DNA from: Neoconidiobolus thromboides FSU 785
Lineage: Eukaryota > Fungi > Entomophthoromycota
NCBI GenBank assembly: GCA_025603075.1
Contig: MU626293.1
Span: forward strand, 76,466-140,465
Direction: 5' to 3'
Length of the DNA: 64,000 bases
The translations under genes and the position numbers were made by a program. The stretch's first letter is position 1; the number at the start of each line of letters is the position of its first letter. Below the pieces are notes generated by a model. The model did no database searches, was not told where the DNA came from, and worked only from the letters and a program-made list of their open reading frames with translations. This document shows, one piece after another, positions 19,701 to 59,179 of the stretch.

Positions 19701-21949
19701 AATAGCCAAATTTCTGAAGGTAATGAACTAATATTATTATCATGTAAATCTAGAAATTTCAAACTATTTAATGAAGAAATATTAGCAATAATTGAACTTA
19801 ATTCGTTATTAGAACAATTTAAACTTTGTAATTTAGTTAAATTACCAATAGATGGTGGTAATAATACTAATCGATTATTGTCTAAATTCAGTTCTTCTAA
19901 ATTGGGTACAAAATTAAACAAATCATCCGGTAAACTAACTAGTTTTGAAAATGATAAATTCAAACACGTTAATGTTAATAATGGATTAGCTGGTTGAATT
20001 ATTTTTGTAATTGAATTTTTAGAAATAATTAATCGATACAAAGATTGAAAATTCAGTTGTAATGTCGATATAAAATTATAATCACATAATAATAATTCCA
20101 AATTTGGCAAACTACTTAACGAATCTAAATTATTTAATTGATTTTTTCTTAAATCTAACTCCCTTAATTTAGATAGTTGACTTATTGATTCTGGTAAACT
20201 ACCAACAATTCGGTTGGATATTAACAATAATTCTTGTAAATTAACCAATTGATTAATAGTGGAGGGTATAACTTTAATTTCATTGAACGAAATATCCAAA
20301 TGAATTAAATTAATTAAATTAGTAATAACAGATGGAAATAATGAAAATCGGTTATTAGATAAATTCAACTTCTTTAAATTAACTAATTTCGAAAATTGGG
20401 AGGGCAAAATTTCAATTCGATTATTGCCTAATAATAATGAATTTAAACTTTTTAAAGATTCTAATTTGGAATAATGAATAGATTTAATTCTATTACTAGA
20501 AAGATCCAAAAAAGTTAATGTTGTTATTGCTTTAATACATTCTGGTACGTTTTGTAATTCACATCTTGATAATTTCAACTCTTTTAAAGCTGAACAATTA
20601 GCAAAAAACTCAAAAGTTAAATCAATCACTAAATTTTGACTTAAATTTAAACTATGGACTTGATTCGCATGTCTCATTAAATTTTGGGGGATTTTTCGTA
20701 AATTTTTGGCTCTTAAATCGACATGCTGATAATTAGGTATTTCTTGATTCTAAATTAAATAATAAAAATAAATATTACAATATATTATTAAATTACTATT
20801 ATTATTATTAACTAAACTTACATCATCCATACAACAATTTCTACTATAATCAAAGATAAATTTAAAATAATAAGAATTATCTTCTCTACCAATGTTACGT
20901 AAATCATCCCTTGAAGTATAACCAATTTTTTCTAACATTCTTTTTAATATAACTAATGGTCTTTCATCACTTGTAAGTTCCCTTTCTAAAATTCGTCTTA
21001 TTAATAAAATAAACCACCATTGCATTATATTATATTATATTATCATAAAAAACAACTCATATCTCAAATTTTATAAAAAAAATTATTAATTCAAACTATC
21101 AACTTACCAATATTATGCTTCCTTAGATACAATGCATATGGTGATACATCATTTACAAAAAACTTTTTCGCTAATGGAATCAACAGTTCACTCGCTTTAG
21201 TTCTCAAAGAACAATAAACCGTTGCATACGTATGATCTGGTTTAAACACCCTAATTCTATACTGAAATCGATCATCTCCTTCTTCTTCATATAATGTATC
21301 TTCTGTTATCCATCCACGATCATTTTCAAATTGAGATACTTCGGGTATAGAGGTAATATCATCAGCTATTAAAGCGGAAGTTGTTGGGGATACTACTACC
21401 CCATTGCGTTTTAGACTGTTTAAGGATTCTGAGCTTGGTTTACGTTTATTATTGTTATTGTTGTTAATCGTGTCTATTGTCAGCATATCTGGAGGTACTA
21501 CATCGTCTAAAGAAATTAATGCAATAAATAAAATAAAATAGATAAATTTAAATCAACTTACCACTCTCCACTTTAGCAATCTATATTATTTTAAAAAAAA
21601 CCGACATTTAATTTTTTTTAAAATATTTAAAAAAAAAGCTTACCAACGCTTCAATTTCTTTTGCATCCATTTGAGAGTTTAATAATTTTGAAAACTCAGT
21701 ATCAGAACCTCGTCTTCTTACACGTTGTAATAAAGTACTTCGATCTTCTTTAGATAATTCAGTGTCTGAGCATGAACTTAATCGCTTCTTTTTGCTACTA
21801 GTTTTTGTAGAGGGCGGCTCTTCTATTTATTTATAAATGGAATTCAAGTATTAATTATGTTGATTTAGAAGTAAGACAAGAGAGGGGATGAAACAATACT
21901 TACCTATAATTTTATCTTTGTTCTTTCGTCTTGGGAATGGGAATTTCAT
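16717..21949 (-). CDS. CYR1: Fungal-type adenylate cyclase (G-alpha-binding/RA, LRR, PP2C-like, class III cyclase), about 7 exons; catalytic N/R substituted
   Basis: Exons run from MKFPFPRRKNKDK (21949) through YRIRVFKPDHTYATV, ERPLVILKRMLEKIGY, many LRRs, FALFDGH (PP2C-like), VFTDIKNST, YEVKTEGDAF, SVRMGIH and RMDYLG. The last exon ends at 16717. ORFs 21091, 20750, 17345 and 16717 are parts of this gene. Confidence 0.93.
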
Positions 21950-39396: not shown

Positions 39397-41064
39397 ATGA
39401 TGGTACTACCTTCAATTCTATTATTGCTTTGTATAAGCTTTAGTTTCAGCTACAAAATACTAATCCATAACGATTTCGGTACCAAATCACATATCAAGGC
39501 CATATTAGAGATAAGTGATTATCTGAGTAATTTAGGCCATCAAGTAGTTTATGCAACTCAACGAGATAAGTTGGCATTTAGTCAAGGATATAATGTGACT
39601 CAGCTTGCCCTGCCCGATATAAACTATCACTCTGATTCAACCTCAACTATCGATTCAAGTACAAAAAACATCAATAAAAATTTACTCAAATCAGCACCAT
39701 TTATACTATCTAGGTTACATTCTGAAAATTATATCAATTTATCCAATTTAAACAAAGAATCAAAGTTTGATTTATTTATTTGTGATTTCCTATCCAGTGC
39801 ATGCCAAGATGTAGCTTATATGCATGGTGTACCATTGGTAGTGGGTTTTCAAACTTTGGATATAGTGCCTGAATTAGGTGAAGGGTACAAAACAACTATT
39901 AACGGGATGGGCCCATTGACTTTAGATGGTCTAAACTTTTTCCAAAGATATTATTATAAATTTATGCTAAGGCTAAAGACAATGTGGATCAGAAAATCAG
40001 TAGAATACCAGATTACTCAAAGTCGATTGAAACATGAAATCAAGTCAAAGGCTTTTTTTGGTGACCTAAAATATGCTATAGCTATCGCTAACTCGTATTT
40101 TGGATTTGAAATACCAGCTAAAGCTCCACCCAATTTTCATACTATTGGACCATTATCTAAGGTATCAGAACATACTGAGATAAATGAAAAAGAATATCCA
40201 GGTGTCGTCAATCTTTTAAATAATAGTAATAACATCTTATACGTTGCTTTTGGTTCTTCGGTTGCTCTAGACTCCAATATAATGTATAAACTAATGTATT
40301 CAATCTTATATTCAATTGAAACTAAAGTGATTGATGGAGTCGTATGGGGTCTAGGAATCACTGGGATGGAAGGGCTGCCTGAAGAGATTAAAGTAGGGGA
40401 TACGGTTTATTATATAAAAAAGATGATCAACAATGAATATCCTAATATCCAGCTGTTAAAATGGGCACCACAATATTCCATTTTAAACCATAAGAACACA
40501 AAACTATTTTTATCTCATGGTGGATTAGAATCCATTACTGAAGCTACTATGACAGCAACGTCTATTCTTTGCCTACCCATTTTAGGCGATCAACTTATGA
40601 ATTGTAAAAAGATTAAGGAGATGGGTATTGGAATAAACTTTGAGTTAAATAGGGTTGAAAGCAACCAGGTGATCGATAGCATCAGAATAATACTTAAAGA
40701 TGAAGATGGCAAATATAAATTAAATAGTAAGAAGTACCAATTGATTACAAGTGGTACTCAAAAAAGAATTGAAATTGCTTCAAACGTTATTATTAAACAT
40801 ATTGAACTTGCCAAATTATGTAGACCATTTAGTCCATTTAATCCAAATAAGGATACTACACCTTGTGAGTTGACTCATCTTATTCATCCAAGTATGAAGC
40901 TAAGCCCTTTTGTAAAGTATAATTTGGATATCTATCTAGCTAACATTTTAATCCTTTGCTTTGTTTTGTTTTTTACCATTCGATTTAGTTGTTTTATTGC
41001 AACTAAAGCAATAGAAGCTGTACAATCAAAGATTCATATCAATGATAATAAGAAAAAAAAATAA
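39397..41064 (+). CDS. UDP-glycosyltransferase (GT1, UDPGT), signal peptide + C-terminal TM + poly-Lys tail
   Basis: 555 aa, intronless. UDPGT signature WAPQYSILNHKNTKLFLSHGGLESITEA...LPILGDQ, N-terminal SH catalytic position, C-terminal TM and NKKKK*. Confidence 0.92.
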   Translation: MMVLPSILLLLCISFSFSYKILIHNDFGTKSHIKAILEISDYLSNLGHQVVYATQRDKLAFSQGYNVTQLALPDINYHSDSTSTIDSSTKNINKNLLKSAPFILSRLHSENYINLSNLNKESKFDLFICDFLSSACQDVAYMHGVPLVVGFQTLDIVPELGEGYKTTINGMGPLTLDGLNFFQRYYYKFMLRLKTMWIRKSVEYQITQSRLKHEIKSKAFFGDLKYAIAIANSYFGFEIPAKAPPNFHTIGPLSKVSEHTEINEKEYPGVVNLLNNSNNILYVAFGSSVALDSNIMYKLMYSILYSIETKVIDGVVWGLGITGMEGLPEEIKVGDTVYYIKKMINNEYPNIQLLKWAPQYSILNHKNTKLFLSHGGLESITEATMTATSILCLPILGDQLMNCKKIKEMGIGINFELNRVESNQVIDSIRIILKDEDGKYKLNSKKYQLITSGTQKRIEIASNVIIKHIELAKLCRPFSPFNPNKDTTPCELTHLIHPSMKLSPFVKYNLDIYLANILILCFVLFFTIRFSCFIATKAIEAVQSKIHINDNKKKK

Positions 41065-43080
41065 GGTATCAGTACTTTTGGTACATTAATGTCACTATTA
41101 AAAATAAATTTTCAAAAGGTACGTTTGTATCAATTTAGCCTAAAAGTCATTTAAGTAACATTTCAATATAAAATAATAGTATTAAACCAATTTTTCACTT
41201 CAAACATTAGTTTTTTGTAATAAATGAATGATTGACAAAAACTTTATAATAAATAAACTTCATTTTGTTCTAATACTAGATTAAATATTTATAAACTTTT
41301 ATATTTTACATCAATTTAATGCATATATAATAATGATTTTAGTGATAAGGATCATAAATAGGCAAGTTTAAAAATAACTTGATAGCTTAAGAGGCCAAAT
41401 TAGAGTGTATAGAAGATAAATGTAACAAATATTGAGAGATAGAAGTTAAAAAAATATGATACTCGAAGGGTGGAATATTATCGTAAAATGAGATACCAGC
41501 TATTTTTTGGCATGAAAATGACAATGTAAACATAGCCAAAATCTCATTACGGTATTCTACATTATATAAACACCAAACAAAACCATTGGCGTTGTTAGCT
41601 GGCCTTTTACTGATACAATAAGTTTTTTTACCTCGGTCTTTGAGATCGGTTTTACAGATATTAATATAATAGATTAGCTCTTTGTCATTGCTTTGGACTT
41701 CCATGGTAACTCTGGAGTTTTGTAAGTTGCCGTTAATGATGAAATTATATAATTTCAAGTCAGACTTACTCGAAGGGATTTGAATTAAATCAATCAAAGC
41801 CGATTTGTTACTCTCTTTTAGAGAAACACCGCGTAAGCTAGGATATAACTTGTACCATATGATACCACTATCCTTTTCAAATACATTCCAATTACATTTA
41901 TAGACCCTAGCATCTAATGATAGTTTACTCTTGATTGTAAACTGTTTAAGTGGCATATGATAGCTAGGTAACTCAGTTGATTCACTGATCATATTATACT
42001 CTGGTAGCACTTCCATGTTTTGACTATTGCTATTGTCGATTATGCTTTTTTAAATATTCATTTAGATTATTTTGTTTCTCCTTAAATACTTTATCCTTTT
42101 TATAACCTTCCAATTCAGGAGATTTCTTCTTATCGCATTACCAAATTAGTTAATTAAATTGTGATAATATAAATCTAATTGATTTTACAATATTAGCTAA
42201 GTGTTTTAAAATAGAATCCTTTTTTTCACTTCCTCAAAATATATAACACTATAATATACTTAAATCAGTTAGCCATTCATCTTATTTCATCCTTACGTTT
42301 ATCCCGTATAATAAATGTACCCATTTATTAATGATTCCTATACAAACTTGATAGTAACAATTTATATTGATCTGCTAATCAGCTTTCAACTTGAATTTGA
42401 TAATAGCCTTTATATTTGTTTTTTAATACCCAGATTTTAACTTTATTGCAGGGTTCAAACCAAAGTAAAACTACGTTTCGCTATTAGCTTCCAAGATTAT
42501 AAAGTCCTAATACATCTATTGATTTTTAGCCATTATTCATAGCCTTGTTTTGTTCTCGATTTCTTTTCCCCTACAAAATTACAATTCTGGTTCTTTATTT
42601 GTCAATTTAATAACCTCATATCAAACCCTTTAGCTTTTGTTAAAACATTTTACTAATTAATTACTGTCTTATTTAAGCCCATATTCGAGAAATACAGCTG
42701 ATGAGTGCGCCCCTTTAATTTATGGATTAATACTTGATTATTTTTTATCTTTTTTTTATTTTCTACGAACTGCCTTTTATTAAGCTCATGTTATTATGTA
42801 TTTACTATTAGCATTATTTTATACAACTAATTAATATGCTATAAGTTTTATTAATAGACTTTGGGTTTATTTAAAAAACAGCAACTAAGTTCTTTATCTT
42901 AATTTTTTCGAATAGGGTTTTTTATTATACAGTGATATTTAATTTTTTGATCCCTAATATTATCTATAAATTTTTTGTGGAAATTTTATAGTATCATATG
43001 AAGTAGATTGATCTAGACTGATTTAAAATTTATATGCTGGGTTATAGCCATAAGCTATTAAATTAAATTGAAAAAAATAT
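40787..43080. repeat. Segmental duplication unit A (UGT 3' end + LPxY gene + its upstream region)
   Basis: Colinear with 44722-47010 in coding and non-coding sequence, for example ctattaaattaaatt(g/t)aaaaaa at about 43055 and 46990. Boundaries are approximate. Confidence 0.75.
41387..42016 (-). CDS. Twin-LPxY family protein 1 (uncharacterised, 209 aa)
   Basis: Intact intronless ORF, LPEY-x8-LPSY; 46 differences from 45316-45945 by my count (about 78% identical). Confidence 0.85.
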   Translation of the reverse strand: MEVLPEYNMISESTELPSYHMPLKQFTIKSKLSLDARVYKCNWNVFEKDSGIIWYKLYPSLRGVSLKESNKSALIDLIQIPSSKSDLKLYNFIINGNLQNSRVTMEVQSNDKELIYYINICKTDLKDRGKKTYCISKRPANNANGFVWCLYNVEYRNEILAMFTLSFSCQKIAGISFYDNIPPFEYHIFLTSISQYLLHLSSIHSNLAS

Positions 43081-43930
43081 ATGGTAATTAAATAAAGATT
43101 ATTAAAAGTTATTTATAATATACATAAAACTAAGCTTGTATTGTACTTTAAGTTATATAAAATATAAACTTTTTTACTATTTTATTATTTTATAAATTAC
43201 TTATATATTAATAATAAATGTAATAAAAATATGTTCTTTTATCTAGAAATTTTACAATAGCTTTTCTATTTCAATACCATTTAAGAAATAGGAGAAATAA
43301 TGAAACTAAAAACTTTATATAATCAGCTTTATTTAGGCTAATTTATAAATAAAATAATTCTAAAATAAAATAAAATAAAATATAATAAAATAAAATACTA
43401 TAATTATATAAGTAAATTTAAAAAACATGTTAACACTATTGAACTTTTTCTATGATATTTATAGTTTTATTTTTTCCAGCTTTTAATTTTTTACTTGTAT
43501 AACTTTTGAGCTTAAAAAATACCTTTTTAATAAAATTTAATGTTAAAGTATAAAATGAGATTTTGATTATGAATACTTTAATTGAATAAGTATTTAGTAT
43601 TTTTCAAAAAAGTTATAATTTTGCTAGAAATCAATTTAGATTTTATTACCTGAAATAACTATTATAATTAAAAAAAAACTGTTTTTTAATTTTTTAAAAG
43701 CTTTGCTTTACTTATACCATATAGGCATTAAAACTAGATTTTCTAATAAAAATACAGTTAATTTTATAAATTGTATTATCATTTTTATTAAGGTTATTTG
43801 TTTTAAAATAAAAATCACCTTACATTTAAGATGACTGAAAATTATTACATTGCTTATTAGCTTATTGTATTTATTGAAACTTTTTAAAAATTACTTTACT
43901 AGTCTGTTTTTGTTTTATTTAATAATTGAA

Positions 43931-44037
43931 ATATCTGGATGTTTTTTTTGATTTCATCACTTTTTCCATTTTTTAAGTGCTATTTGAGTGGAAAGATTGT
44001 TAGTCCAATTCTTAAACAAAAAATTATATCCCCATAT
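43931..44037. mobile_element. MITE-like element copy
   Basis: atatctggatgttttttttgatttcatc...atatccccatat with the family core. Confidence 0.72.
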
Positions 44038-44313
44038 TGTTTTTACTTTTGTTATCAAATTTTCAATAAATTTAGAGTGTTTTTAGTTTAATTTATTAAT
44101 TTTCCTTCATCTCTATTTTTGATTTCACTTTTTTTGTTTTTAAATCTTTTAGCAATATTTTCAAATCCTTTCCTATTAACACCATGTTCTAAATATACCT
44201 TTTTAGCTTTTATTTAAAGATTTAATAATTTTTTGTCTTTTATTAGATGTAATAATAACTTTTATCTTTTTTGGCATTAAATACAAATCTGAAAAGGCCA
44301 ATTGGTAAAAATC

Positions 44314-44552
44314 ATATGGGGCTGTTTTTTTTAGTTTCATTATTTTTCCATTTTTTAAGCGCTATTTATGTAGAAAAATTGTCAGTAAAATTCTTAAATA
44401 CAAAAATACATCCTCATATAATTTATTTTTATTTTTAAGTTTTATATTTGGGGATGTATTTTTGTGTTTAAGAATTTTATTAATAACCTTTCCACTCAAA
44501 TAGTGCTTAAAAAATGGAGAAAGTGATGAAGCCAAAAAAAACATCCCCATTT
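44314..44552. mobile_element. Inverted pair of MITE-like copies (44314-44419, 44446-44552)
   Basis: Two full copies in opposite orientation separated by 26 bp. Confidence 0.8.
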
Positions 44553-44721
44553 ATTGATTAATAGTTAACAAATTATAATATAAAAAATAGCTTACTGTTT
44601 TTAAGCAAAACTGATATTAGCTTTGGGTCAAAATTGCAAGTAATTTTTCAACAAATTTTGGAGTATTTAAAATTTCAGTTCAGAAAACTAAAAATTTAGA
44701 ACAGAAAATTCGGGGTGAAAA

Positions 44722-44940
44722 TTATTATTAAACAAATTGAACTTGCTAAATTATGTACAGATCATTTAGTCCATTTAATTCAAATAACGATACTACCACA
44801 TTGTGAATTGGCTTATCATATTCATCCAAGTATGAAGCTAAGCTCCTTTTTAAAGTATAGTTTGGGTATCTATTTGGCTAATATTTTAATCCTTTGCTTT
44901 ATTTTATTTTTGTTTTTTAGCATTTGATTTAATTCTATTT
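44722..44940 (+). pseudogene. 3' fragment of the UGT gene (duplicated, frameshifted)
   Basis: Homologous to 40787-41000. It has compensating indels in tgtacagatcatttagtcc and gatactaccacattgtg, and CGA->TGA gives a premature stop. The 5' 460 or so codons are absent. Confidence 0.85.
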
Positions 44941-45315
44941 TAAAATAGTAAAGGTTGCTCACTGATTAAAAGTTTATGCTGATGATTAAATAAAATGATA
45001 TAAACCTTGTTGATGTATAACATTTTTTTTAAAATATTTTCCTAACAATGCTGTATTTGTTAGCTATTACTTTATAAGTTTAATCAATCTAGTATTTCAA
45101 TATAAAATAAGGGATTTTAAACTAAATTTTATAAATATTTTTATAATGGACTATTAAATTAAAACTTCAAAAATTTAGTATAAACATATTTTTTTAATGT
45201 ATTTTAGTATATTAAATATCTAAGAACTTTTTATATTTTACATTAACTAAATGGTATAATAATAATTTAAGGGATAGGAGCTATACATGAGTAGATTCAA
45301 ACACAAATTGGTAAG

Positions 45316-45945
45316 TTAAGAAGCCAAATTGGAATGTATAGAAAACAAGTGTAATAGGCATTGAGAGATAGAAGTTAAGAATATGTGATACTCAAAGAGT
45401 GGAATGTTATTATAAAGAGCGATATCAGCTATTCTTTGGCAAGAAAAAGCCAATGTAAATTTGGCCAAAACTTCATTAGGGTATTCAACATTATATAAAC
45501 ACCATACTGAATTATTACCATGATTGGCAGATCTTTTACTAATACAATAAGTTTCTTTATCTTGTCCTTTGAGGTTGGTTTTATAGACATTAATGTAATA
45601 GATTAGTTCTTTGTCATTGCTTTGGACTTCCATGGTAACTCTCGAGTTTTGGGATTTGTCATTGATGATGAAATTGTATAAATCCAAGCCAGTCTTACTT
45701 GAAGGAATTTGAATCAAATCAATCAAAGCCGATTTGTTACTCTCTTTTAAAGAAACGCCTCGTAAATTAGGATATAGCTTATACCATACGATATCACTTC
45801 CCTTTTCACATACATTCCAATTACACCTATGGATTCCAACGTTCAATGAAAATTTACTTTTGATTGTGAATTGCTTGAGCGGACTATGATAACTAGGTAG
45901 CTCAATTGATTCATTGATACTATTATACTCTGGTAGCACTTCCAT
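45316..45945 (-). CDS. Twin-LPxY family protein 2 (209 aa)
   Basis: LPEY-x8-LPSY; recent duplicate of 41387-42016. Confidence 0.85.
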   Translation of the reverse strand: MEVLPEYNSINESIELPSYHSPLKQFTIKSKFSLNVGIHRCNWNVCEKGSDIVWYKLYPNLRGVSLKESNKSALIDLIQIPSSKTGLDLYNFIINDKSQNSRVTMEVQSNDKELIYYINVYKTNLKGQDKETYCISKRSANHGNNSVWCLYNVEYPNEVLAKFTLAFSCQRIADIALYNNIPLFEYHIFLTSISQCLLHLFSIHSNLAS

Positions 45946-47746
45946 GCTTCAGCTTCTGTTATTGTTATGTTTTCTAAATAATTTTTTAAATAATTTTAAT
46001 TTTTTGTCACCTTATTTATACTTTATCCCTTTCGCAGCCAACCCAGCTCAGAGAATTTATACTTCTCAATTTATCCAATTAATTGACTTGATTGTGGATA
46101 TTTAAATTTAGCTAATAAGCTTATGTTGTTAAATTGGTTGCTTTAAAAATAGATTCTTTGTAATTGATATTTGCTTCCTTAATAGCTATGCTTTGTAAAA
46201 ATTCATAACACCGACAATGAACTTAAATTGGCTGAATATGTCTTCACCATCCCTGGATGTTATCTTGTGTAATATACATAGTCGTTCATAGCTATTTTTG
46301 AATTTGAAAAAAATATATATTTATTTAATAATCAGATTTCAAATTTATTACAAAGGGTTCAAAATCAAAATGAAATCACTTTTTACTACAGATCCCCAAA
46401 ATATAAAACACTAGTACATCCATTGGTTTTTAGCTTACTTTTGATGATCTCATTTTATTTTCGATTTTCTACCCAAAAGTTTCATTTTTTAGTTTATTAT
46501 TAATTTAGTAAAGTTCGATTTAAGCCTTAGTGTTTCTATTTTGAAATATTTTAATAAATACCTATTTAATTTAAGCTGTTTTCCGATCAGTATAGCCAAT
46601 AAACATATCCTTTTGACTCGTATGTTAATACTCAATTTTTGACTATTTGTTTTGGTTTCAACAAGTTATCTTTTACTAAATATTACCTATTGTAGTCATT
46701 ATCTGTATTATACTATATTATTTAATATGTAGTTAATTAGGACCTTATGTGTTTGATTAATCAACTAACTTTTATATATTATTTTAATAATTATAATTGA
46801 GTTATCTTTTTTGATTCTTATAAATTTCAAAAAATAGTATACCATAACTTTTGGCTTCTCTTATCAATCCTTGTAATTATTTTCGTTTTTTGGGGGATAA
46901 TTTCGGACCTTGGGCAGAACAATGCTTACATATCGACCCCAAAACTACACTCCTTTAAAGAGCTATATACCCATTTGTAACCACAAACTATTAAATTAAA
47001 TTTAAAAAATATTCCTGATAACTAAATAAAAACTCCATGTGTTTATAAATTTGCTTTATATAGAAGTTCAAAAATTCTACTACATTTCGTTATTATTAAC
47101 TGAATAACCTCTCTGCTTCATAAGCGGATACTAAATAACTTAAGTTTTTAAATCTTAAATTACCTATTACTACATTTAAGCCCTAATTAATAAAAAGTGT
47201 ATTCTTTATACAAAAAACTGGTATAATACATTTCATTAAATCATTTAATGTATCAAACAAAACTAACTTAAACATGTAAGTTTATTAACTAAGAGATTGG
47301 AGCTTACCATCTGATTTTAACTATTGTTTAGACCAATTGTGTAAAAGTATGCAACTAAGGTTTATAGTCTTTTTGATAAAACAAAAAGTACCTTATTCAT
47401 TAACTAAACCCTTGACGTATTCAGGGATTTTCATTAGAATTTAGTCAGGGACAATTTTAGAATTACCCGTTATGTATGAGTTGAAATAGAATTACAAATC
47501 ATTTAGAGAAAGACAATCAAAGTACTTTTGATTTTAATAAACAAGAAACTAAAGTACTCTACTTAGACAATATACCAACCCAATTAAACACAATCTGTGT
47601 TTTTATAATCTGTTGTTTTTCATTTAAAGATTTGATGATAGGATTAATCTTTTATATTGGCATGAACTTTTAGATGAAAAAAATACTCAGGCTTTGTTTG
47701 AACTCAAAACTAAAATTAAGTACCATTTTAATATTAAAAATTGGTA

Positions 47747-47820
47747 CGCTCATAGCTGGGATCGAACCAGCAACCTCTCGATTAACAGTCGAACGCGCTA
47801 GCCAATTGCGCCATACGAGC
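47747..47820 (-). tRNA. tRNA-Asn (anticodon GTT)
   Basis: Reverse complement GCTCGTATGGCGCAATTGGCTAGCGCGTTCGACTGTTAATCGAGAGGTTGCTGGTTCGATCCCAGCTATGAGCG; cloverleaf with GTTCGA T-loop. Confidence 0.93.
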
Positions 47821-48135
47821 CCCTTTCTTCTTTTTATTGTCAAATATAATATTTAAAGAAAAGATACAGATTTTAATATTCGTAAGATAGTTTCTGTTTT
47901 ATTGATTCGCCATTAAAGCCTTTTAACTTTATTAACATATACAAATAATACTACTCCTTTTGTTTTTTATCTGTTTTGAATTTTCCATTTACTAAATAAG
48001 CCTTCTAAGATTACTACATATATCATACTTTATAGTTCATTATTATTATAACTTTAATAATTTTTGAACTAGATTTAAACTAGCATTTAAACTTATGTGC
48101 TAAAAGTTAATAAGAACAAAGTTATTAGAAACTAA

Positions 48136-48242
48136 ATATGGGGGTGTTTTTTTTGACTTCATTACTTCTTCCGTTTTTTAAGCATTATTTGAGTAGAAAA
48201 ATTGTTAATAGAATTCTTAAACACAAAAAAACATCCCCATAT
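48136..48242. mobile_element. MITE-like element copy
   Basis: ATATGGGGGTGT...ACATCCCCATAT. Confidence 0.82.
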
Positions 48243-48412
48243 AACTAAATAAAATTAATTTATTTGTAGTATTTAAAAGCAAAATTTAATTATTTGACCA
48301 CATGAAATAAAAATAAAAATAAAAATTTGAGAAAAATTTCATAATAACTTGCCAAAAAATATATATAATATATAAAATATATGAAAATTTTTAATAAAAT
48401 ATAAAATTGTGT

Positions 48413-48439
48413 TAATAATAATAATAATAATAATAATAA
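48413..48439. repeat. (AAT)n microsatellite
   Basis: About 9 AAT/TAA units, read directly. Confidence 0.85.
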
Positions 48440-48458
48440 GTGTAAATATAATAAGAAA

Positions 48459-48918
48459 TGTGAAATATCGCTTTGTCAGCTCTATGATTGATTATAACAG
48501 ATAATAACTTAAGTTGCTGTGTCCTTGAGTTCGGAGACAACCAATTCTAGGCTCTTATTTTGATACTATGGGAATTTCTAATTTCATATTACAAACAATA
48601 TTATTCTCTCATTTTGATATCCATACTTGTTGCAGTATAAAAAAGATTCTTCAATATAATAACTCGAGGCTTTTTAACTGAATCGTTCTCTGATATTGTA
48701 CCTCTAATAAAGCCACTAAATCTTTCTGATAATATTTTATATAGATTTTACAGTAACATTATCTATTCTATTTGCCTTCCATAGTCTGTAACCTAATACG
48801 TGCTACTCTTCATAATTCAAGTCTATCTTAGTCATATAAAATAGGACCTTTAAACTTACAGCTGGCCAATCAAGCAAGAACTGCTTTTGATTCCAAGCAC
48901 TGAATATCAAATTTCATA
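48459..48918 (+). mobile_element. Solo LTR (LTR-A, copy 3, most diverged)
   Basis: TGTGAAAT...ATTTCATA (terminal CA mutated to TA), colinear with the other copies; no TSD evident. Confidence 0.78.
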
Positions 48919-48920
48919 TC

Positions 48921-49245
48921 TATTTGATAGGAAGTTTGCAATATTAGCTACAAAGCAGTTAATAATAGATACTTCTTAATAATGTTTTATAAAAATATGT
49001 ATTTATTTACATACTACAGCCTTGATTAATGCTAATATATAGGTTATATTAGTAGAAGCCTTGGTAATATGGTGCTTTTCATTAGATTTAATAGAAATCC
49101 TTCTAACTTATAATATAGATTATAATAAAATAATTTAAAGCTATATTAGATATTTCTGCTTTTAATAAAAATAGTTCTATAGTTTTAAGCAAAATTTTTA
49201 AAACATAAATTTTTTACAAATTAAGCAAAAATGAAATTAATTTAG
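48921..49245. repeat. Dispersed ~300-bp repeat (family C, copy 2)
   Basis: Colinear with 29234-29540; abuts the LTR at 48918. Confidence 0.6.
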
Positions 49246-49826
49246 ATATCTCTATATCATAATTTTAAAGATAACTTTTATATTTATTCAAATAAATTAA
49301 TAAATAGTTTAATTTAAAAATAAACATAAACATTCTAAATTAAGAAATGTTCATATTTTATTATTTCTTATTACTTTGTTTTTTGTTTTAATAATATTTA
49401 ATAGTTTTTTATCAATACAATAAATTGTAGGAATAAAATATACTTTAATCGAAGTGTTGAATTATTGAACTGATATGAAAGTCTCTGTAAGCTAGTCCAT
49501 ATTTAAATGCTATTTGTAAGCAGCTTTATTAAAAGGAAAAATAATGATGGTTGGTAGTACGTATTAAATTGAAAAGTGACATAATGGTTATTATTGCATC
49601 ATTTCGTTAAAAATGAAATGATAGGAATTTTTAGAACTAATATTGAGAGTTTTTCGGATAATTCTAATTTTAGATTGTTATATTGTTGATAAGTTTTAAA
49701 ATTTCACATTGAAAATAGGTAGCAAAATGGAATAAAAAATAGTAATAAATTTATTTAATAATAATGATATAATAAGACTACCAATGGCAGCTAGTAAGTT
49801 AAAAAATAAGACTAATAAATACACAT

Positions 49827-50447
49827 TCAAGAATAAATTAACGAAACGAGTTGTCCCACCACACTGAAAAACGTATAAAACTCCAAACTAGTTAAATAAC
49901 TACAATTGAATCTAACATCCGCAATCTCTGTTCGATCGTGTTTTAAATTAAAGCTACAGACTACTGTATCTGGGAACCCATTTAAATAAATGTTCCATAT
50001 TGAGCGCCCACTACTCAGTCTTTTTTTCTCAATCACATACTTTTTGATCTCAGTTTCCTTCTGGTAAGAATGGGACATCAAAATCACACACTGATTCAAC
50101 TGGGATATTACCTCAGCATAGCATCTTTGATTTAAAGGATCTATAACTTTAAAGTAAAGCTTATGGTCTAATCTTGGTAGCTGATGAGTTTTCATTATGA
50201 CTGAGTCATCAAAGTCAATGAGTTGAATCCCATTATTGGTGGGCTTAATCGAAAACCAAGAAGCTTTGGTGCCTGCTTCTTGTAATTTCCATTTACACTG
50301 AGGGATCTTTTTTATCAAAGAAAAGTTGCTATGTATTGTAAAACTTTTGATTTGGGATGGGTATGAGGGTAGTGCGCTATTATTATATTGTAAGGAATAA
50401 GAAGGTAGCAGTTCACCATTTAAATTGTTATAAGTAGGATCTGACAT
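49827..50447 (-). CDS. Twin-LPxY family protein 3 (206 aa)
   Basis: LPSY-x8-LPSY; FTIHSNFSL, CKWKL, WFSI, YVIEK, IADVRF, LEFY family pattern. Confidence 0.83.
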   Translation of the reverse strand: MSDPTYNNLNGELLPSYSLQYNNSALPSYPSQIKSFTIHSNFSLIKKIPQCKWKLQEAGTKASWFSIKPTNNGIQLIDFDDSVIMKTHQLPRLDHKLYFKVIDPLNQRCYAEVISQLNQCVILMSHSYQKETEIKKYVIEKKRLSSGRSIWNIYLNGFPDTVVCSFNLKHDRTEIADVRFNCSYLTSLEFYTFFSVVGQLVSLIYS

Positions 50448-51438
50448 TTTCTTTACCCTGTGTAGTTTGCTGGGTATTTATACTGTTAATTAAGATGCGC
50501 AGTTAAATTAATGCTCTTATCAGTTTAAGTAATTCGTCTGCTATCAATTATAAGAATTGTTGATATTAGAGATTAAAGTGATAGCTGATTAAATTTAAAT
50601 TATTTATTTTCATAACGAAATCGGCGCTTTTATATATTCTTTAAATGAAAATAGGTTCGGTTTTATTATTATTAATAGGACTTTATTTGAAACTACAGTT
50701 CATGATTTAGATCAATATAAGTCAAGAAAGTTGTTGAACGCTTAAATAGATGAGCTATTATGATATCATTTAGAAGTATTAACCAGTAAGAATAAGCTAT
50801 TTATTTATTATCATTTCTTAATTTAAGATTAGTAATTTTAAGTCCAGCTTAAATTTAGAATAAAATACAAAATGATTTTAGAAGAGATATTAAAGACAGC
50901 ATAATATAGTGTATAAATTTAACCTTAGTACCATTTATTATATTATGCGTTTATTTTTAGTATATTTGGTCATATTTTTTTAGTAAAAATTAAAGATAAT
51001 AAACAGTGTTGAATTCCATTTGGGCTATAAACAAATTGCAAAACCAACCCTAAATCAATCAAAGGGATACAAAAAATTAAAGCGCCGTTTTAGTAACTAT
51101 TTTAATATATTAAAGGGGCTCTAATTTTTAGCTGCCATCGATTAATTATGACTCACCTATAGTACATTATTTTTGTTGATTATACTGAGTAACTTGTTTC
51201 GCAGTTGTATCACAAAACAAAATGAAAATTATATATTTTGCCTATAATTAAGTAGAGTTAGTAGTCAATACTTTAAAAAGCAAATTTAATATTTTTTACA
51301 ATAATAATAATTGATATGATCAACAATTTTGGCAGCAGCCCAGCCCATATTTTGACCCTAAAAGTAAAAAATCCAAAACCATCGCTGCGGAATGACCCTA
51401 AAACTATAAAATAGCACCTATTTTCATCAAGTTGAAAA

Positions 51439-52062
51439 ATGAGTTTATCAAACTCAAATTCAATCATCTCCGAAGGTGATGAGTCACTTCCAGCTTATTC
51501 CACAGCCCATCATGGTATATCACTTCCTCCATATTCTCCTCCAATTAAAAAATTCATACTCCAAACTGAATTCTCATTATTTAAAAATATCAATCAATGT
51601 ACCTGGAAGCTAATAGAAAAGGGATCCGAAGTTGTTTGGTATCAGATCTACCCTACCAATGATGGAAGGCAGCTTCAAGGGCTTGATAATAGTATTTTAC
51701 TAGAAACCAAAACATATCAATTGTATCCAAATATATTAGTTAAAATACTAAAGATGAATCAATTGAGAGCTGAGCTGAACTACGAACTAACAGTTTCAAG
51801 ATTAACTACCTACAATCCTTATGCAATAGAAGAGGAAACAGGCGCTTATACCATTACTAAAAGAAGGATCGGAGACAGTAATTTGTACCAATGGGTTATA
51901 AGCTTGAATGAGAGTCCATTAGTGATCTTAGCTAGCTTCTGTTTATCCCATAAAGAGCTAATGATTGCTCAGGTAAGGTTTAGTTTTCATATATCCTCAG
52001 TTGAATTTCCAATCTTATTAATAGCTTGTTGTCAGATCCTTGGTTTCGTTTATTCTCAATAA
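51439..52062 (+). CDS. Twin-LPxY family protein 4 (207 aa)
   Basis: LPAY-x8-LPPY; FSL, CTWKL, VWYQI, YTITK, LASFCL, IAQVRF, VEFPILL. Confidence 0.83.
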   Translation: MSLSNSNSIISEGDESLPAYSTAHHGISLPPYSPPIKKFILQTEFSLFKNINQCTWKLIEKGSEVVWYQIYPTNDGRQLQGLDNSILLETKTYQLYPNILVKILKMNQLRAELNYELTVSRLTTYNPYAIEEETGAYTITKRRIGDSNLYQWVISLNESPLVILASFCLSHKELMIAQVRFSFHISSVEFPILLIACCQILGFVYSQ

Positions 52063-52457
52063 ATAATTTATAAACTAAATATGAGGTTAAAATTTACTTT
52101 TTGTTTATTTGTTTTGTATCTGTCTTCAAATTTACAAACTCCGTATTAGGATATCTAAATTTTTTTAATTTTTTCATTCAGTTTTTAAAATTCAATAACT
52201 TATGAAAGTAATCAATAAAACAATACTAACCTAATTTTTTATCAAGAAGCAAAAATACCTGACAGTTTTAAAAAATTATAAAAATCTGGTAAATAGTAAT
52301 TTATAAGTTAATATAAGTAATTATGAGTGATTTTGTGAATACAATTTAAAAGTATACTGTAAAAAGTTGTTTAATAAAATCCTATTATTGAAAAATCTAT
52401 AGTTGATGTTTATTTTTTTAGTTTTTGATTTAATTTTAAAATAATTTTACTAAAAAT

Positions 52458-52564
52458 ATATGGGGATGTATTTTTATGTTTAAGAATTTTACTAACAAAT
52501 TTTCCGCTTAAATAGTGCTTAAAAAATGGAAAAAATAATGAAGTTAAAAAAAACAGTCCCGTAT
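52458..52564. mobile_element. MITE-like element copy
   Basis: ATATGGGGATGT...acagtcccgtat. Confidence 0.78.
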
Positions 52565-52756
52565 ATTAAAGTATATATTATATAAAATCATAGTAACAAA
52601 AGCCTTGTTTTTTTATATTTTTTATTGGTAAGTTATATAAAAATTAAATTATTTTAAATTATTTTATTATAATTTATAGCATAAATTGATAAAACTTTTA
52701 TTAAGTTTAATAAAAATTGCTATATTATCAAGAGCCTTTACTAATTTAACTTATGT

Positions 52757-53220
52757 TGTGAAATATCGGTTTGTCAGTCCCATGGTTAATTATAGCATAA
52801 TAATTGCCTAAGCTGTTGTGTTCTCGAGTTCAGAGAAAATTAATCCCACGCTCTTATTTTAATTTGCTATGAGAATTTCTAGCTCCATCCCAAAGAATAT
52901 TATCTTCTCATTTTGATATTTATACTTTTCAGAGTATAAAAGAGATTTTAGAACATAGTAGTTCGAGACTTTTTAACTGAATTATCCCCTAATATCTTGA
53001 ACATTGAATAAAGCCACTAAGTTTTCTTAATAGTATTTTACATAGATTTTACAGTGGTATTCTCTATTATATTTGTTTTACATAGTCTGTAGCCTATTAC
53101 GTGCTATTCTTCATAATCCAAGTCCATCTTAGTCACATGAACTAAGGCTTTTCGACTTATAGTGTAGTCAACCAAGCAATAGCTGCTTTTGACTCCAAAC
53201 CCTGAGTACCAGATTTCACA
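52757..53220 (+). mobile_element. Solo LTR (LTR-A, copy 4)
   Basis: TGTGAAAT...ATTTCACA flanked by ATGT/ATGT (4-bp duplication); shares long identical blocks with copy 2. Confidence 0.85.
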
Positions 53221-53265
53221 ATGTATTGACATTAATTAAAGCTATAATAAACAAATAAAATATGT

Positions 53266-53371
53266 ATATGGGGATGTATTTTTGTGTTCAAGAATTTTCC
53301 TAACAATATTTCTACTCAAACAATGTTTAAAAAATGGAAAAAGTAATGAAGTCAATAGAATATCCTTATAT
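53266..53371. mobile_element. MITE-like element copy
   Basis: ATATGGGGATGT...atatccttatat. Confidence 0.75.
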
Positions 53372-53574
53372 CCTAGATTATAGTTTAATATTTAAAATAT
53401 CTAAAATAATTTTTTCTTACTAGTTGTTATTTTTTATTAATACTCTGTTTATATTTCTAAAATTATTTAGTATATATTTAAAAAATATTAGTTTGGATAT
53501 TGTTTTATTTTGAAATTTTTAAAATGCTTTTCATATATCAGTTTTTACTTTTATTTAATATATGTAAAGATGTT

Positions 53575-53739
53575 TTTCAAGTACTATTTAAGCAAAAAAC
53601 TGTTAGTAAAATTTTTAAGCATAGAAATGTATTATATGGGGATGTATTTCTATATTTAATAATTTCACTAACAATCTTTCCACTTAAATAGTGCTTAAAG
53701 GATGGAAAAGTAATGAAGTCAAAAAAAACATCTCCATAT
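53575..53739. mobile_element. Truncated inverted MITE fragment fused to a full copy (53634-53739)
   Basis: aagtactatttaagcaaaaaactgttagtaaaattttt followed by ATATGGGGATGT...ACATCTCCATAT. Confidence 0.75.
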
Positions 53740-53993
53740 ATTATTTTTACCATTTTTAAGTTTTAATTAAACAACAAATCAAATAATAAATCAAATAAAT
53801 GTTATATAGGAATTTTATTAGTTCTTATTTTTTATTATATTAAAACTTACAAAAAATTTATTTTGAAGTTTAATTATAAAAGCTTATATTTTATTTCTAA
53901 ATGAATTCTGAGACCAATTTAGGTATCCTTTGTATTGAGCTAAAGCAATTAAAAGAATATATATTATTTACCAATTCCAAGTCCATTGGATAA

Positions 53994-54075
53994 CTCAGCA
54001 TAGCTCAGTTGGAAGAGCGATGGACTGTAAATGATAGCAATCCATCGGTCCCTGGTTCGATCCCGGGTGCTGAGA
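53994..54075 (+). tRNA. tRNA-Tyr (anticodon GTA) with 9-nt intron (54031-54039)
   Basis: CTCAGCA/TGCTGAG acceptor stem, ATGGA-CTGTAA-[ATGATAGCA]-A-TCCAT anticodon arm, GTTCGA T-loop; 73 nt after splicing at the canonical 37/38 position. Confidence 0.92.
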
Positions 54076-55275
54076 TCATATTTTTTCTGTTAATAAATAT
54101 AATTAGGATTTGGTGCTTATTTATAATAAAAAGGAGAGATATAGTTTAGTAGTGATGAACTAAACATTTAGACCCTTAGTTTTCAGATAAGTTGCAACGG
54201 GATACAGTGGGTAAGTGAAATAGATGATGTTTATAGGATACAGCTTAACATTACTTTTTATTGGATATCAATTGATTAAAAGTATAGGATGAATGAAATC
54301 AAATCGCTTTTGGATTACATGTGCTGCTTCAGTTCAAGTTGCTTAGCTTTTGGGTAATAACGTTGGATTAGAAAAATTATTTTTCAAATTGTCTGATACT
54401 TTAATTTCAACTCGGGATTGTATTATTAAATTAAATTCTAGACAATTACCCAGAATTTACTTTTTAAATTCAGAAGAGTTGGATAAACTTGTATTAATAA
54501 TATGAGATATATGATATTTAATGTTAAATATCGATAAAGAATATTCTATAATTAGCTAAATAACAGGGAGTGCTTTACTTTTAAATTATCTGAATTCTCG
54601 GGTTTTTAAAAAATCAATGTACCATTATCATTATTTAGTTTTATATTACTAATTCTTTTTATTATAAATTTATAAAAAAGGCAATTTCGGAATTCTATTT
54701 CTTAACCTTATTTTAAGTAGATTTCATCTGATTGTTTTTTTCAAGTTCCCGTTTTGAAGATAAAGTTTATTTTCTCCATATCAGCTATATATTACTAAAG
54801 CCAAAAACAAACAAATATTCTAAAATTGAGTTTTTTATAATACTGTGTTTATTGTATGTTAATATAACTATTAGCAGGTTTTGTAAAAATAAAACAAAAC
54901 AGCCTAAAACAGTTAAAATCGCAGTTTTAATAGATGATTTAAAGTTGCAAAGTAGTTTTAGTTATAATATAGAGTCTGAATGATAGATAGAGATCAAATT
55001 GAGATAGTTGTATATGCCAATAAAAAGTATTTTGTAATGGAAAAAATTAAAGGAGTGAGTTGAGTCATAATTATATGGAAATGTGGGTTAACTTAGTGCA
55101 GTAAAACATTTATGTTTAAACTTGGCGAATTGAATTGAAATATGTCTGATTATAACTTATGTATTTATATCAATATATTATTAGTTTTTATCATTAATAT
55201 ATTGTTCTTTTTTTTAATTTAGTGCAAAGTTGTATTGTATTGTTATAAAAGCTCATTAAATTGATCAATTGATTA

Positions 55276-55866
55276 ATGATAAATAAAAACAGTATGAGCA
55301 TATTACCATCATATGAATCGATTATTAAAGAAGGCTTACCTTTGTATAATGATGCGGTAAGTTACTACAGAATAGATATTAAGTTCTCGTTTAATTTACT
55401 TAATAATATGAAACTAATCATTCTTGACAAACAAACGAATAAAGTTATTTATAAACTATATCAACACGAACGAGGTTTTGAACTCAAGCGTATGGATAGT
55501 ACTAACATAGTGGATCTATTAGAAGTACCTAGAACCAATCAACTTTCATTTTTGTTTTATATAAATAATGGGGTATCTGCAACCATGGAATACGTAGATT
55601 TGGACCAAACCTATAAAATTCAACTTCAAGATTTAAGATTATATACTAGCAAATACTTTATTATATCAAAATTGAAATTCAATAATTTGGCTATGTTTCA
55701 TATTACAGAACAAGGGTATGATCTTGTTTTGATTAAAGGAGTGTTGGCTTTCTCTTCAAAAAGGTTATTGGAAATAGCTGTTTTTAAACAGCTGGAAGAA
55801 ATCGAGTTTGAGGTGATTTTTCTGGCTATTACTCGGTGTGCCGTTTGCTCTTGGATTACTACTTAA
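55276..55866 (+). CDS. Twin-LPxY family protein 5 (196 aa; could start at the internal MSILP)
   Basis: LPSY-x7-LPLY; FSF, IYKL, RGFEL, IISK, IEFEVIFL. Confidence 0.8.
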   Translation: MINKNSMSILPSYESIIKEGLPLYNDAVSYYRIDIKFSFNLLNNMKLIILDKQTNKVIYKLYQHERGFELKRMDSTNIVDLLEVPRTNQLSFLFYINNGVSATMEYVDLDQTYKIQLQDLRLYTSKYFIISKLKFNNLAMFHITEQGYDLVLIKGVLAFSSKRLLEIAVFKQLEEIEFEVIFLAITRCAVCSWITT

Positions 55867-56658
55867 TAAATGATATGTACTATATATTGTTATACCTCCT
55901 TGTTAGCTTCTGTACTATTGGTTTTATCCATTTGGTTTTAAATGATTTATCAATAAAGGACCTTTGTTTATATACTAATTAAATAAACTTTTGATATTGG
56001 TTTATTTTTGTATTGGTTTTATCAAATTTGAAATAATGACTGTTATTTATTTTTTGAATAAAGCGTTGTTATACCTAGTAATATTACATATTTTATTATA
56101 ATTAAATTATAGTCGAAAGAGAGATCACATCTTTTACATTATCAAGAGCATAGGATAAAAAGTAAACACATCCATTAAAACGAATTTACTTCTGAATATT
56201 CATGTAGCTTCTAACCTAAATAAACCCAAGTATTTTTTGACTTAAATTCCTTTTCGATTACCTCAACGCTACCATTCTACCCCCAGAAAGCCCATCTAAT
56301 TATACCAACACCCTCATAAAAAACCTGGTCAAAATTATCAGTCTGATCTCACTTATTCAATCTATCAAATGTTCTTAAACTCAAACCAATGAAGAAAAAT
56401 TTAACTAAATTTTATTCGGAACCTAGGATTACCGGAATTTCCATATTTATTCGCAAGCGTTTTAAACTTGTTCATAACACTTAATTTTATGCAAAGTAGA
56501 TCAAATACTTTATAGAATAGAATAAAATTAAGCGATTTTATAAAAGTATTAAAAATCAACAAACGTTTATTTGAGAGCGCAGTAAAAGATGGGGATATAA
56601 AACAAGGGATTTTGGTAGGTTTGTTTTCATCAAAATTAAATTGAAATAAAATAAAGAA

Positions 56659-57237
56659 ATGAGTGTATTACCAGAGTATCAGAGTTTTGTTAAAGAAGAG
56701 CTACCCAGCTATCGCGAGGAAGCTAGCTATTTCAAAATAGCCAAAAGAAAACATTTCAGCTTTAAAGGCAAGGAGTATGGAATTTATAACAAAGAGAAAA
56801 ACTCAAAGGACTATAAGGTCCATCAACTAAAAAGAAGCTTAAAGCTAAAAGGCAAAAACAATGAGCTGTTGATAGAGCTATTCCAGTTGCCACAAATAGA
56901 GAATAGCTACTCTTTTTTAATTTCTAACCAAGATAATGTTAACGCTGTTATGATAAGAAATAATACTGATAGAATGGGGAACTACAACATTATTATTAAT
57001 AGATATGATGTTCCTATGTTTTCGAAAATGTATGGGTTTGTCAAGACGGACAGTAACAATGAATCGTTAATATGCTACAAAATTGTCAATTTAGATGATG
57101 GGTATGTGCTCGGCAAGTTTGTTATTTGTGTTTCGATGAATCAGTTGGTCGAACTAGGATTCTATATGTCGATCGATGAACTGGATGTTAAGATTCTACT
57201 ACTTGGAATTGCCCAGTGTTATAGTAATGCTATATGA
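56659..57237 (+). CDS. Twin-LPxY family protein 6 (192 aa)
   Basis: LPEY-x7-LPSY; FSF, YKV, LGKFVI, LVELGF, VKILLLGIAQ. Confidence 0.8.
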   Translation: MSVLPEYQSFVKEELPSYREEASYFKIAKRKHFSFKGKEYGIYNKEKNSKDYKVHQLKRSLKLKGKNNELLIELFQLPQIENSYSFLISNQDNVNAVMIRNNTDRMGNYNIIINRYDVPMFSKMYGFVKTDSNNESLICYKIVNLDDGYVLGKFVICVSMNQLVELGFYMSIDELDVKILLLGIAQCYSNAI

Positions 57238-58582
57238 ATATAAAAGGGGATGTATTAGTAATTAGTTGGGTTAAAGTTAATTTATTACAATGTATATCGA
57301 TAATCAGGTTATTGAATTTATTTCAAATATCAATCAATAAATAATTTTTTGAAGTTTTAAATGTTTTTTGACTATTGTAATTTCTATAAAGTTTTATTAT
57401 TTTTCTATTTTATAGCGATTAAAATAAAATTTTAAATTACTAAAATTTCAACATAAAATGATTACGTTTTGCTACGAAACCTAAAAGTTATTCAATTTGT
57501 CAGATAAAGTATTAATTCAAAAGGTTGATTAGATAAAAGTGATGTAAGAAAGCCGCAGAAGGCTCGAAGGTATCATAGTTGATAACAAATCTTTATCAAA
57601 TATATAAATATAATAGCTGTCCATATTATACTGTACTTAAGAAGTTTATGGTTAGGATAGATATAAATATAAATGTAGATGATATTAAAACAAAGGTTAA
57701 GCTTGTTTCTTCAATGAGTAAAAAAATGTTTTACATAAATAAAGGAGTGGGGTACAGAATGGAACTATTCATAAAAAGAGTTTAAAAAAGAGTCTAGAGC
57801 AGAACAACTGCAAGAAAAATTATGATAGGAATATATATTAAAATTTTATAACTCTGTAAAAGGACCTGATGATAACATGAAGAAAGCCCTTTAATAACCT
57901 AAGTACTGAAGTTTTGAAAAATTTAGAATCGAAGATCTGCCTGTAACTTTAGGCTGATTTGTTTCTCAAATCCGTAAAATTTTGTTTTATATATTTTAAA
58001 GTAGAGTGTGTATTTTGAAAAACTTCGAAAGCTGTAGGACCTTTGTTTAAATGTCCATTAATTTAGATTATTGTTTTGATCATTATTATTAGATAAAATA
58101 TACTATTATTCATACAACTGGTAAATTTAGAAAATAACTATTAATATAAAAAAACAATTTCTAAATGTGAAAATGAAAGGACAGTAGGTAAAGATAATGT
58201 CATAAACTTTTTGATTAATTTAATTATAATAACTTTAGTTTTATCATATTTTGTGGGTAATCTTGTTATAATTTACACTTCAAGAAACTATTTGAAAATA
58301 AAAAATTGGATTCCTTTTTATTGAAGTCTAATAATAAGCGATAAATATAAAAGGATAAATGAAATTTATCCTAAATGAAATAATAAAATAAAATAGCAAA
58401 ATCAATTTAATGAAATAAAGCTCTGATCAGCTTTCTGTTTTATTAATAATCAAACAATTTCTAATTATTAATCCATTTAAATACCCTTCGGTTAAATAAA
58501 ATAAATGCCTCCAGATGATTGAAACCCAACAGTATAAAAACACACAATTTTCAAGGACTATCCTCAAAAAATCAAACCAAAC

Positions 58583-59179
58583 ATGTTAATAGAACATGAC
58601 GTCTTACCAGAATACGAAGCGTTAGAACAGGGAACTTTGCTGCCTCGTTACACCAATCGAAACAAGGTATTTACTATCCGCAACGAGTACTCTTTAACGC
58701 CTCTTCACAAAACCCGGTGGAAGATTCAGGAGGGTAGTGGTAAAGTAACGTGGTATAAAGTTGAAAAATATCAAAGAGGTTTACAGTTGATCGAATACAA
58801 TAAACAAATTTTATTAGAAACCAAGCGGTTCTCAAATCAGGCACAAAACTTTCAAATCGGATTACCAAGCTGGGAGTTCCCACTAGCCCAGGTTAACGCA
58901 TGCTGCAGTACCTGCTTTCAGCTTTTGATCAATAGATTGGGGTTCAAGGGCAGTTTTCAAGACGTTTATGTGATCAAGAAGAGAAAGGTTAGGAATAGCG
59001 AATTGTTGGAGTATCGAGTTTATATGGAATCGAGTGAAAGCTCGATGATTGCCTCATTTCGATTGAGCTGTGTTAATAACACAATTGCGTATATGAAGTT
59101 TAGCTCAAATTTGCAGCTGTATGAATTTCATATTATTTTGACTTGTTTTGTACAGCTAGTTTCTTTTATTTATTCTTGA
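58583..59179 (+). CDS. Twin-LPxY family protein 7 (198 aa)
   Basis: LPEY-x8-LPRY; FTI, WYKV, RGLQL, YVIKK, IASFRL, IAYMKF, YEFHIIL. Confidence 0.83.
   Translation: MLIEHDVLPEYEALEQGTLLPRYTNRNKVFTIRNEYSLTPLHKTRWKIQEGSGKVTWYKVEKYQRGLQLIEYNKQILLETKRFSNQAQNFQIGLPSWEFPLAQVNACCSTCFQLLINRLGFKGSFQDVYVIKKRKVRNSELLEYRVYMESSESSMIASFRLSCVNNTIAYMKFSSNLQLYEFHIILTCFVQLVSFIYS

Follow-up and report, generated by a model that had tools for sequence, protein, structure and literature searches.

We analyzed a window of 64,000 nucleotides of DNA from the entomophthoralean fungus Neoconidiobolus thromboides FSU 785 (assembly GCA_025603075.1), where seven open reading frames (ORFs) of 192-209 amino acids (aa), three minus-strand and four plus-strand, form an array spanning 17.8 kb in the ORF listing of the window (Table 1); the proteins of the array are on record on scaffold MU626293.1. 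The original prediction had described each of these ORFs as encoding a twin LPxY motif near its N-terminus, and we recovered both the ORFs and the residues of every motif pair exactly as it had listed them. A regular-expression scan found exactly two LPxY motifs per protein, 8 residues apart in five of the window copies and 7 residues apart in ORF5 and ORF6. An eighth member, P0007 (a hypothetical protein at NCBI), occurs singly on scaffold MU626258.1 of this assembly, its motif pair being LPDY/LPTY at a spacing of 8 residues, such that the family is a tandem expansion with seven genes in the array and one on another scaffold. A tblastn search at E<=10 for further copies or pseudogenes within the window returned noise only.

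Table 1. Genes of the twin-LPxY array and the two copies of its youngest duplication; positions count from the first nucleotide of the window.
Feature	Position	Strand	Length (aa)	Motif pair in the tail	Positions encoding the tail motifs	Remark
ORF1	41387..42016	-	209	LPEY/LPSY	41960-42007	
ORF2	45316..45945	-	209	LPEY/LPSY	45889-45936	Deposited annotation is a 209-aa gene
ORF3 (P0002)	49827..50447	-	206	LPSY/LPSY	50361-50408	
ORF4	51439..52062	+	207	LPAY/LPPY	51487-51534	
ORF5	55276..55866	+	196	LPSY/LPLY	55303-55347	
ORF6 (P0003)	56659..57237	+	192	LPEY/LPSY	56668-56712	
ORF7 (P0001)	58583..59179	+	198	LPEY/LPRY	58604-58651	
Duplication, source copy	40787..42017					3' end of the UDP-glycosyltransferase (UGT) gene and ORF1
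Duplication, second copy	44722..45946					UGT-tail remnant and ORF2

The twin motif is conserved almost without exception. In an alignment of eight sequences that includes P0007, the invariant columns are Met1, the Leu, Pro and Tyr of the first motif, the Leu, Pro and Tyr of the second, and one Tyr within a strand; six of the seven invariant columns other than Met1 therefore fall on the motif, for which the post-hoc chance is ~2e-10. Pairwise identity over the family is 15-35%, except for ORF1 and ORF2, which share 78%. The other shared patterns named in the original prediction are present as a majority consensus (KxFTI..FSL, WYKxY, YxIxKR, LAxFxL, IAxxxF and EFxIxL), but none of them is invariant. 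The Y+3 position of the first motif is hydrophobic in six of the eight members, which resembles the extended PPxYxxL contact in the ENaC-Nedd4 WW complex. Exactly 16 residues past the first motif Tyr, six of the eight members have a Lys at the start of strand 1, and in the other two a Lys lies at 18 and at 22. The use of LPxY rather than PPxY is probably what a genome of 26% GC favors, because Leu has A/T-rich codons and Pro has none. The N-termini are hydrophilic, with a mean Kyte-Doolittle hydropathy of -0.67 to +0.16 over the first 20 residues, and thus have no signal-peptide-like start, as had been claimed for the array from the outset.

Two studies of probable RNA runs contain the locus. 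In run X1, contigs match the window without mismatches at 55223-56075, 56664-57272 and 58609-59121, which correspond to ORF5, ORF6 and ORF7 with short untranslated regions, at depths of 43, 1105 and 73, respectively; most intergenic bins between ORF5 and ORF7 have zero depth, and splice joints were not found. Contigs bounded by the ORFs, mostly empty intergenic bins and no splice joints indicate transcripts and not contaminating DNA, and ORF5, ORF6 and ORF7 are intronless. In the same run, 0.73 of the words sampled from 49827-52062 are present, the stretch from ORF3 to ORF4, in which the gene share is 0.56, and the RNA-run contigs thus speak for expression of the array from ORF3 to ORF7. In the runs labelled as organisms C, D and E, 6-19% of the 31-mers from this stretch recur, an overlap for which a repeat in common, mislabelling of strains or close relationship could be responsible. 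The runs of the second study (organism B) contain ORF6 and ORF7 in two forms, one identical to the window and one ~7% different, at 56685-57147 and 58578-58978, so that one culture may have contained two haplotypes, nuclei or strains.

Of the differences listed between these forms, 31 of 34 are synonymous (23/26 in ORF7 and 8/8 in ORF6). Between ORF1 and ORF2, the synonymous divergence (dS) is 0.77 and the nonsynonymous divergence (dN) 0.11, giving a ratio (omega) of 0.146. An omega this low, together with variation that is mostly synonymous, indicates purifying selection, and the bodies of the proteins, which had been thought to be diversifying, appear instead to reflect old divergence and to be conserved now. 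When tail and body were compared, the dN/dS ratios for ORF1 and ORF2 were alike, at 0.17 in the tail and 0.14 in the body, over few sites. Chance ORFs in AT-rich DNA were considered and ruled out by the RNA contigs, the predominance of synonymous variation and the fold described below. Several of the deposited gene models look wrong: that of ORF1 is a 105-aa fragment (P0006), that of ORF4 (P0005, 191 aa) lacks the conserved C-terminal helix and ends in unrelated residues instead, and that of ORF5 begins at Met7. The unspliced reading of ORF4 agrees with the family alignment.

AlphaFold2, run on the family alignment, yielded models of ORF7 (predicted local distance difference test, pLDDT, 78.6; predicted template-modeling score, pTM, 0.77) and of ORF6, part of the most divergent pair (pLDDT 73.2, pTM 0.74). 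In both models, twelve strands lead into a C-terminal helix that continues up to the protein end, and each model matches 1zxu and tubby along its entire length, including this helix. In a Foldseek search against the PDB, TULP1, tubby and At5g01750 rank first, and the structure matches in AlphaFold-DB include LURP-one-related proteins, phospholipid scramblases 1-5, tubby-like F-box proteins and many fungal proteins named 'Tubby C-terminal-like'. Similarly, comparison by shape in the ESM Atlas leads to DUF6593, LOR, Scramblase and Tub clusters, with a 171-aa DUF6593 cluster, mostly from Zoopagomycota, as the top structure match (TM 0.66/0.76). Bateman et al., who defined this superfamily, place the hydrophobic C-terminal helix inside the barrel, as its buried core, and not across a membrane (PMC2639001). 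The domain is accordingly predicted by both models to be a closed 12-stranded barrel of the tubby C-terminal-like superfamily (tubby/LOR-DUF567/scramblase/DUF6593), and the original guess of a tubby/LURP1/scramblase barrel, made from strand pattern and helix, was borne out by the models and the structure searches. Residues 1-25 of the ORF7 model have pLDDT <50 and residues 1-19 of the ORF6 model are also low, with a low-confidence helix between the motifs in ORF6. Given a tail of low confidence and little structure, the LPxY motifs are predicted in both models to be exposed and not buried, so that one of the conditions that would have refuted the original prediction does not apply.

By sequence, the family stands apart. 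When 1.84 billion (1.84e9) representative proteins were searched exhaustively with an HMMER profile, all 7 matches came from this genome, and word-indexed searches of 5.8 billion clusters, one with ORF7 and the other with the 8-sequence profile (E<=10), found the window's own proteins only. P0007 was absent from the query profile of the former search yet scored E=7e-21, so that relatives as distant as the paralogues would have turned up, and within public data the family appears by sequence to be confined to N. thromboides. All 8 proteins have only chance matches in Pfam at E<=1 and E<=10, and the family profile matched nothing among PDB sequences, 1zxu included. Among the Pfam hidden Markov models (HMMs) of the superfamily, that of LOR/DUF567 (PF04525) matched 0/8 proteins even at E<=10, and those of DUF6593 (PF20236; criterion, the gathering score), Scramblase (PF03803) and Tubby (PF01167) were not matched either; by sequence, the family could thus be assigned to no single Pfam family within the superfamily. 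By features in the ESM Atlas, a DUF6593 cluster comes first for three paralogues (0.91/173, 0.88/143 and 0.80/116 shared features), although only the 0.91/173 match reaches the tool's reliability marks, and the matches of ORF3 are DUF6593, LOR and Scramblase. The proposal of an undescribed family consequently holds in that no characterized family matches by sequence, but not for the barrel domain, which belongs to a known superfamily: these proteins are orphans by sequence, yet they have a known superfamily and a known architecture.

Among the relatives suggested by structure, the closest in architecture is phospholipid scramblase 1 (PLSCR1). Like the family, it has twelve strands that form a barrel about a helix at the C-terminus (PMC2639001), and scramblases are among the structural matches. 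Its unstructured N-terminal extension likewise carries PY motifs, and a 2025 study demonstrated that PLSCR1 is bound and ubiquitinated by NEDD4-2 through the PY motif, with mutation of the PY tyrosine weakening both (PMC12368045). The two differ in several respects, in that the family lacks a PF03803 match, its tail is only ~25 residues long and not proline-rich, its motifs are LPxY and not PPxY and always two at fixed spacing, and it is tandemly expanded in one fungal species. No column conserved in the 8-sequence alignment corresponds to the scramblase hallmarks, a Cys palmitoylation cluster and an acidic loop of Ca2+ type before the helix (PMC2639001). LOR/DUF567 proteins such as At5g01750 (PDB 1zxu), whose function is unknown beyond plant defense and stress phenotypes (PMC10264818), differ from the family in having no described PY tail. 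DUF6593, a fungal tubby-like domain, resembles the family by Atlas features and shape, with no match to its Pfam HMM; we found no mention of it in the literature searched. Tubby, TULP and plant Tubby-like F-box proteins have no sequence match to the family, and tubby barrels are larger (~260 aa, with extra loops) and bind phosphatidylinositol 4,5-bisphosphate, PI(4,5)P2 (1i7e). Sna3, Bsd2 and the arrestin-related ARTs, small Rsp5 substrates and adaptors of yeast, have (L/P)PxY motifs in unstructured regions, like the family, and theirs bind the WW domains of Rsp5, the acceptor lysine being 10 or more residues beyond the PY motif (PMC3738095; PMC2810449), but their folds are unrelated, being membrane proteins or arrestin domains without a tubby-like barrel.

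The sequence L/PPxY is a class-I ligand of Nedd4-family WW domains (PMC2824488), and both motifs of the family have the (L/P)PxY form, invariant in 8/8 members. LPxY is the form used by the Rsp5 substrate Mga2, and Rsp5 requires an acceptor lysine on the C-terminal side of the PY motif, 10 or more residues away, the linker in Sna3 being 15 residues (PMC3738095). We propose that the eight products are small cytosolic proteins, soluble or peripherally associated with membranes, in which a disordered tail of ~25 residues would precede a 12-stranded tubby-like barrel around a hydrophobic C-terminal helix. The two LPxY motifs would serve as class-I WW ligands (PY motifs) that dock a fungal HECT ligase of Rsp5/Nedd4 type, and the docked ligase would most likely ubiquitinate the barrel protein itself and thereby govern its turnover or sorting, in the manner of NEDD4-2 and PLSCR1; the Lys 16 residues past the first Tyr in 6/8 members is a plausible acceptor. 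Secondarily, the proteins might act as true adaptors that carry the binding partner of the barrel to the ligase. We consider the genes, the motif and the fold to be solid, and ligase docking to be a reasonable inference with a direct animal precedent. The PLSCR1 precedent makes the docking idea credible, but not a new kind of system, and since PLSCR1 is a substrate of NEDD4-2, it favors substrates over adaptors. Overall, we give about an even chance to a tail that docks an Rsp5-type ligase and most likely marks the barrel protein itself.

Several points weigh against this interpretation. To our knowledge the ligase is universal in fungi, and it is on this ground that Rsp5 is assumed for this genome. 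A motif of four residues can suit other partners, the first motif often reads YxxPhi and thus also fits a tyrosine sorting signal, and the conserved Lys may be structural. The models rest on alignments of 7-8 sequences. Finally, since relatives were detected in one species only, comparative support for the link between tail and barrel is missing.

Fungal tubby-like barrels of the LOR/DUF6593 type are numerous and without known function, and an invariant short linear motif on such a barrel offers a cheap and specific hypothesis, namely WW binding and ubiquitination at Lys +16. If the tail recruits Rsp5, the pairing of a PY tail with this barrel, recently demonstrated for mammalian PLSCR1 and NEDD4-2, would be recurrent and independently evolved in the superfamily, suggesting ubiquitin-dependent control as a general feature of these barrels; if it does not, the array would be an ordinary lineage-specific gene expansion.

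A different division of labor, in which the proteins are genuine Rsp5 adaptors whose conserved tail docks the ligase while each diverged barrel presents a different cargo or lipid for ubiquitination, would account for an invariant docking module on very diverged bodies (15-35% identity), the pattern of an adaptor family, and two PY motifs so near each other are well suited to multivalent contact with WW domains. The structural matches also include plant Tubby-like F-box proteins, receptors of SCF (a cullin-RING ubiquitin ligase) in which the tubby domain is the recognition module of the ligase, and for this reason we retain adaptors as a minority view; the putative docking module of the family differs in being a short linear motif for a HECT ligase and not an F-box for SCF. 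However, PLSCR1, the only experimentally studied protein of like architecture, is a substrate (PMC12368045), selection on the barrels is purifying and not diversifying, LOR and DUF6593 barrels have no known ligand, and no cargo-like genes are linked to the array, the neighbors being the UGT and lipases. We therefore regard adaptor function as rather unlikely, and are similarly doubtful that the eight proteins form a modular adaptor set, with one twin-LPxY handle on eight barrels that each serve a different membrane lipid or cargo. Were such a set real, it would mirror the plant F-box-Tubby proteins on the side of the HECT ligases and offer a first way into the function of the uncharacterized fungal DUF6593/LOR-like barrels.

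The conservation of the tail may alternatively be due to a role that does not involve WW domains, such as a YxxPhi sorting signal, binding of another partner, packing against the barrel or oligomerization. The hydrophobic Y+3 of the first motif agrees with YxxPhi, short motifs are promiscuous, and the low-confidence helix between the motifs in the ORF6 model may hint at structure there. The invariant part, however, is L-P-x-Y and not Y-x-x-Phi, Y+3 of the second motif is not hydrophobic in 7/8 members, the tail is predicted to be unstructured in both models, and Leu and Pro invariant three and two residues before Tyr are the class-I WW signature (PMC2824488). A non-WW role accordingly seems improbable to us, to about the same degree as an adaptor role.

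Much less probable is that these are tail-anchored membrane proteins whose C-terminal helix spans the membrane, comparable to small PY adaptors such as Bsd2 or Ndfip. The hydrophobic helix does reach the very C-terminus, the best 19-residue Kyte-Doolittle window is 1.6-1.9 in ORF4, ORF5 and ORF7, and the helix of PLSCR1 was long taken as transmembrane (PMC2639001; PMC12368045). Yet hydropathy is below the usual threshold of 1.6 in 5/8 members, and in four of those five (ORF1, ORF2, ORF6 and P0007) hydropathy peaks in a strand and not in the helix, while both AlphaFold2 models align the helix with the buried barrel core of 1zxu and tubby (PMC2639001). On the grounds of this marginal hydropathy and alignment, a transmembrane anchor was rejected as the principal interpretation. 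Pathogens and viruses also exploit PY motifs to engage Nedd4 ligases of their hosts, but the thought that these small proteins of an insect-associated entomophthoralean lineage, expanded in tandem in that lineage, are exported unconventionally as effectors that hijack insect Nedd4-family ligases is the least probable of all, given the absence of a signal peptide, purifying selection without arms-race signatures and expression in runs without an established tie to infection.

With respect to the growth of the array, a maximum-likelihood tree separates {ORF1, ORF2, ORF5, ORF6} from {ORF3, ORF4, ORF7, P0007}, with ORF5 and ORF6 as a supported pair and long terminal branches. The youngest event is a segmental duplication of ORF1 along with the 3' end of the adjoining UGT gene, for which blastn pairs 41274-42017 with 45205-45946 (80.7%) and 40787-40973 with 44722-44911 (88.5%). 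With a dS of 0.77 between ORF1 and ORF2, even this youngest duplication is not recent. The UGT 3' remnant that it left at 44722-44911 is annotated as a 62-aa gene.

No GC-containing 7-9-mer is shared by at least five of the seven upstream regions beyond what shuffled sequences give. TATAAA-type boxes lie ~30-45 nt before the ATG of ORF3, ORF4, ORF5 and ORF7, at similar distances. Structured RNAs in the array are limited to two tRNA genes, a tRNA-Asn(GTT) at 47747-47820, inside the array, and one at 53994-54075 (54 bits in Rfam), in which the anticodon loop read by ARAGORN is unusual ('gt'), as a short intron could explain. The other genes of the window are typical of a fungus and include an adenylate cyclase with leucine-rich repeats (LRR) and PP2C, an OPT transporter, a UDP-glycosyltransferase and class-3 lipases; the first of these is a large ORF at 17345-20677 in which LRR, PP2C and adenylate/guanylate cyclase domains form the architecture of a fungal Cyr1-type adenylate cyclase. 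Between ORF4 and ORF5, an element of ~110 bp at 53633-53742 is bounded by terminal inverted repeats (GGGGATGT...ACATCTCC) and has a summed RNA-contig depth of several thousand (bin mean 4473 in run X1), with contigs that extend into unrelated sequence, and it looks like a miniature inverted-repeat transposable element (MITE) carried in many transcripts.

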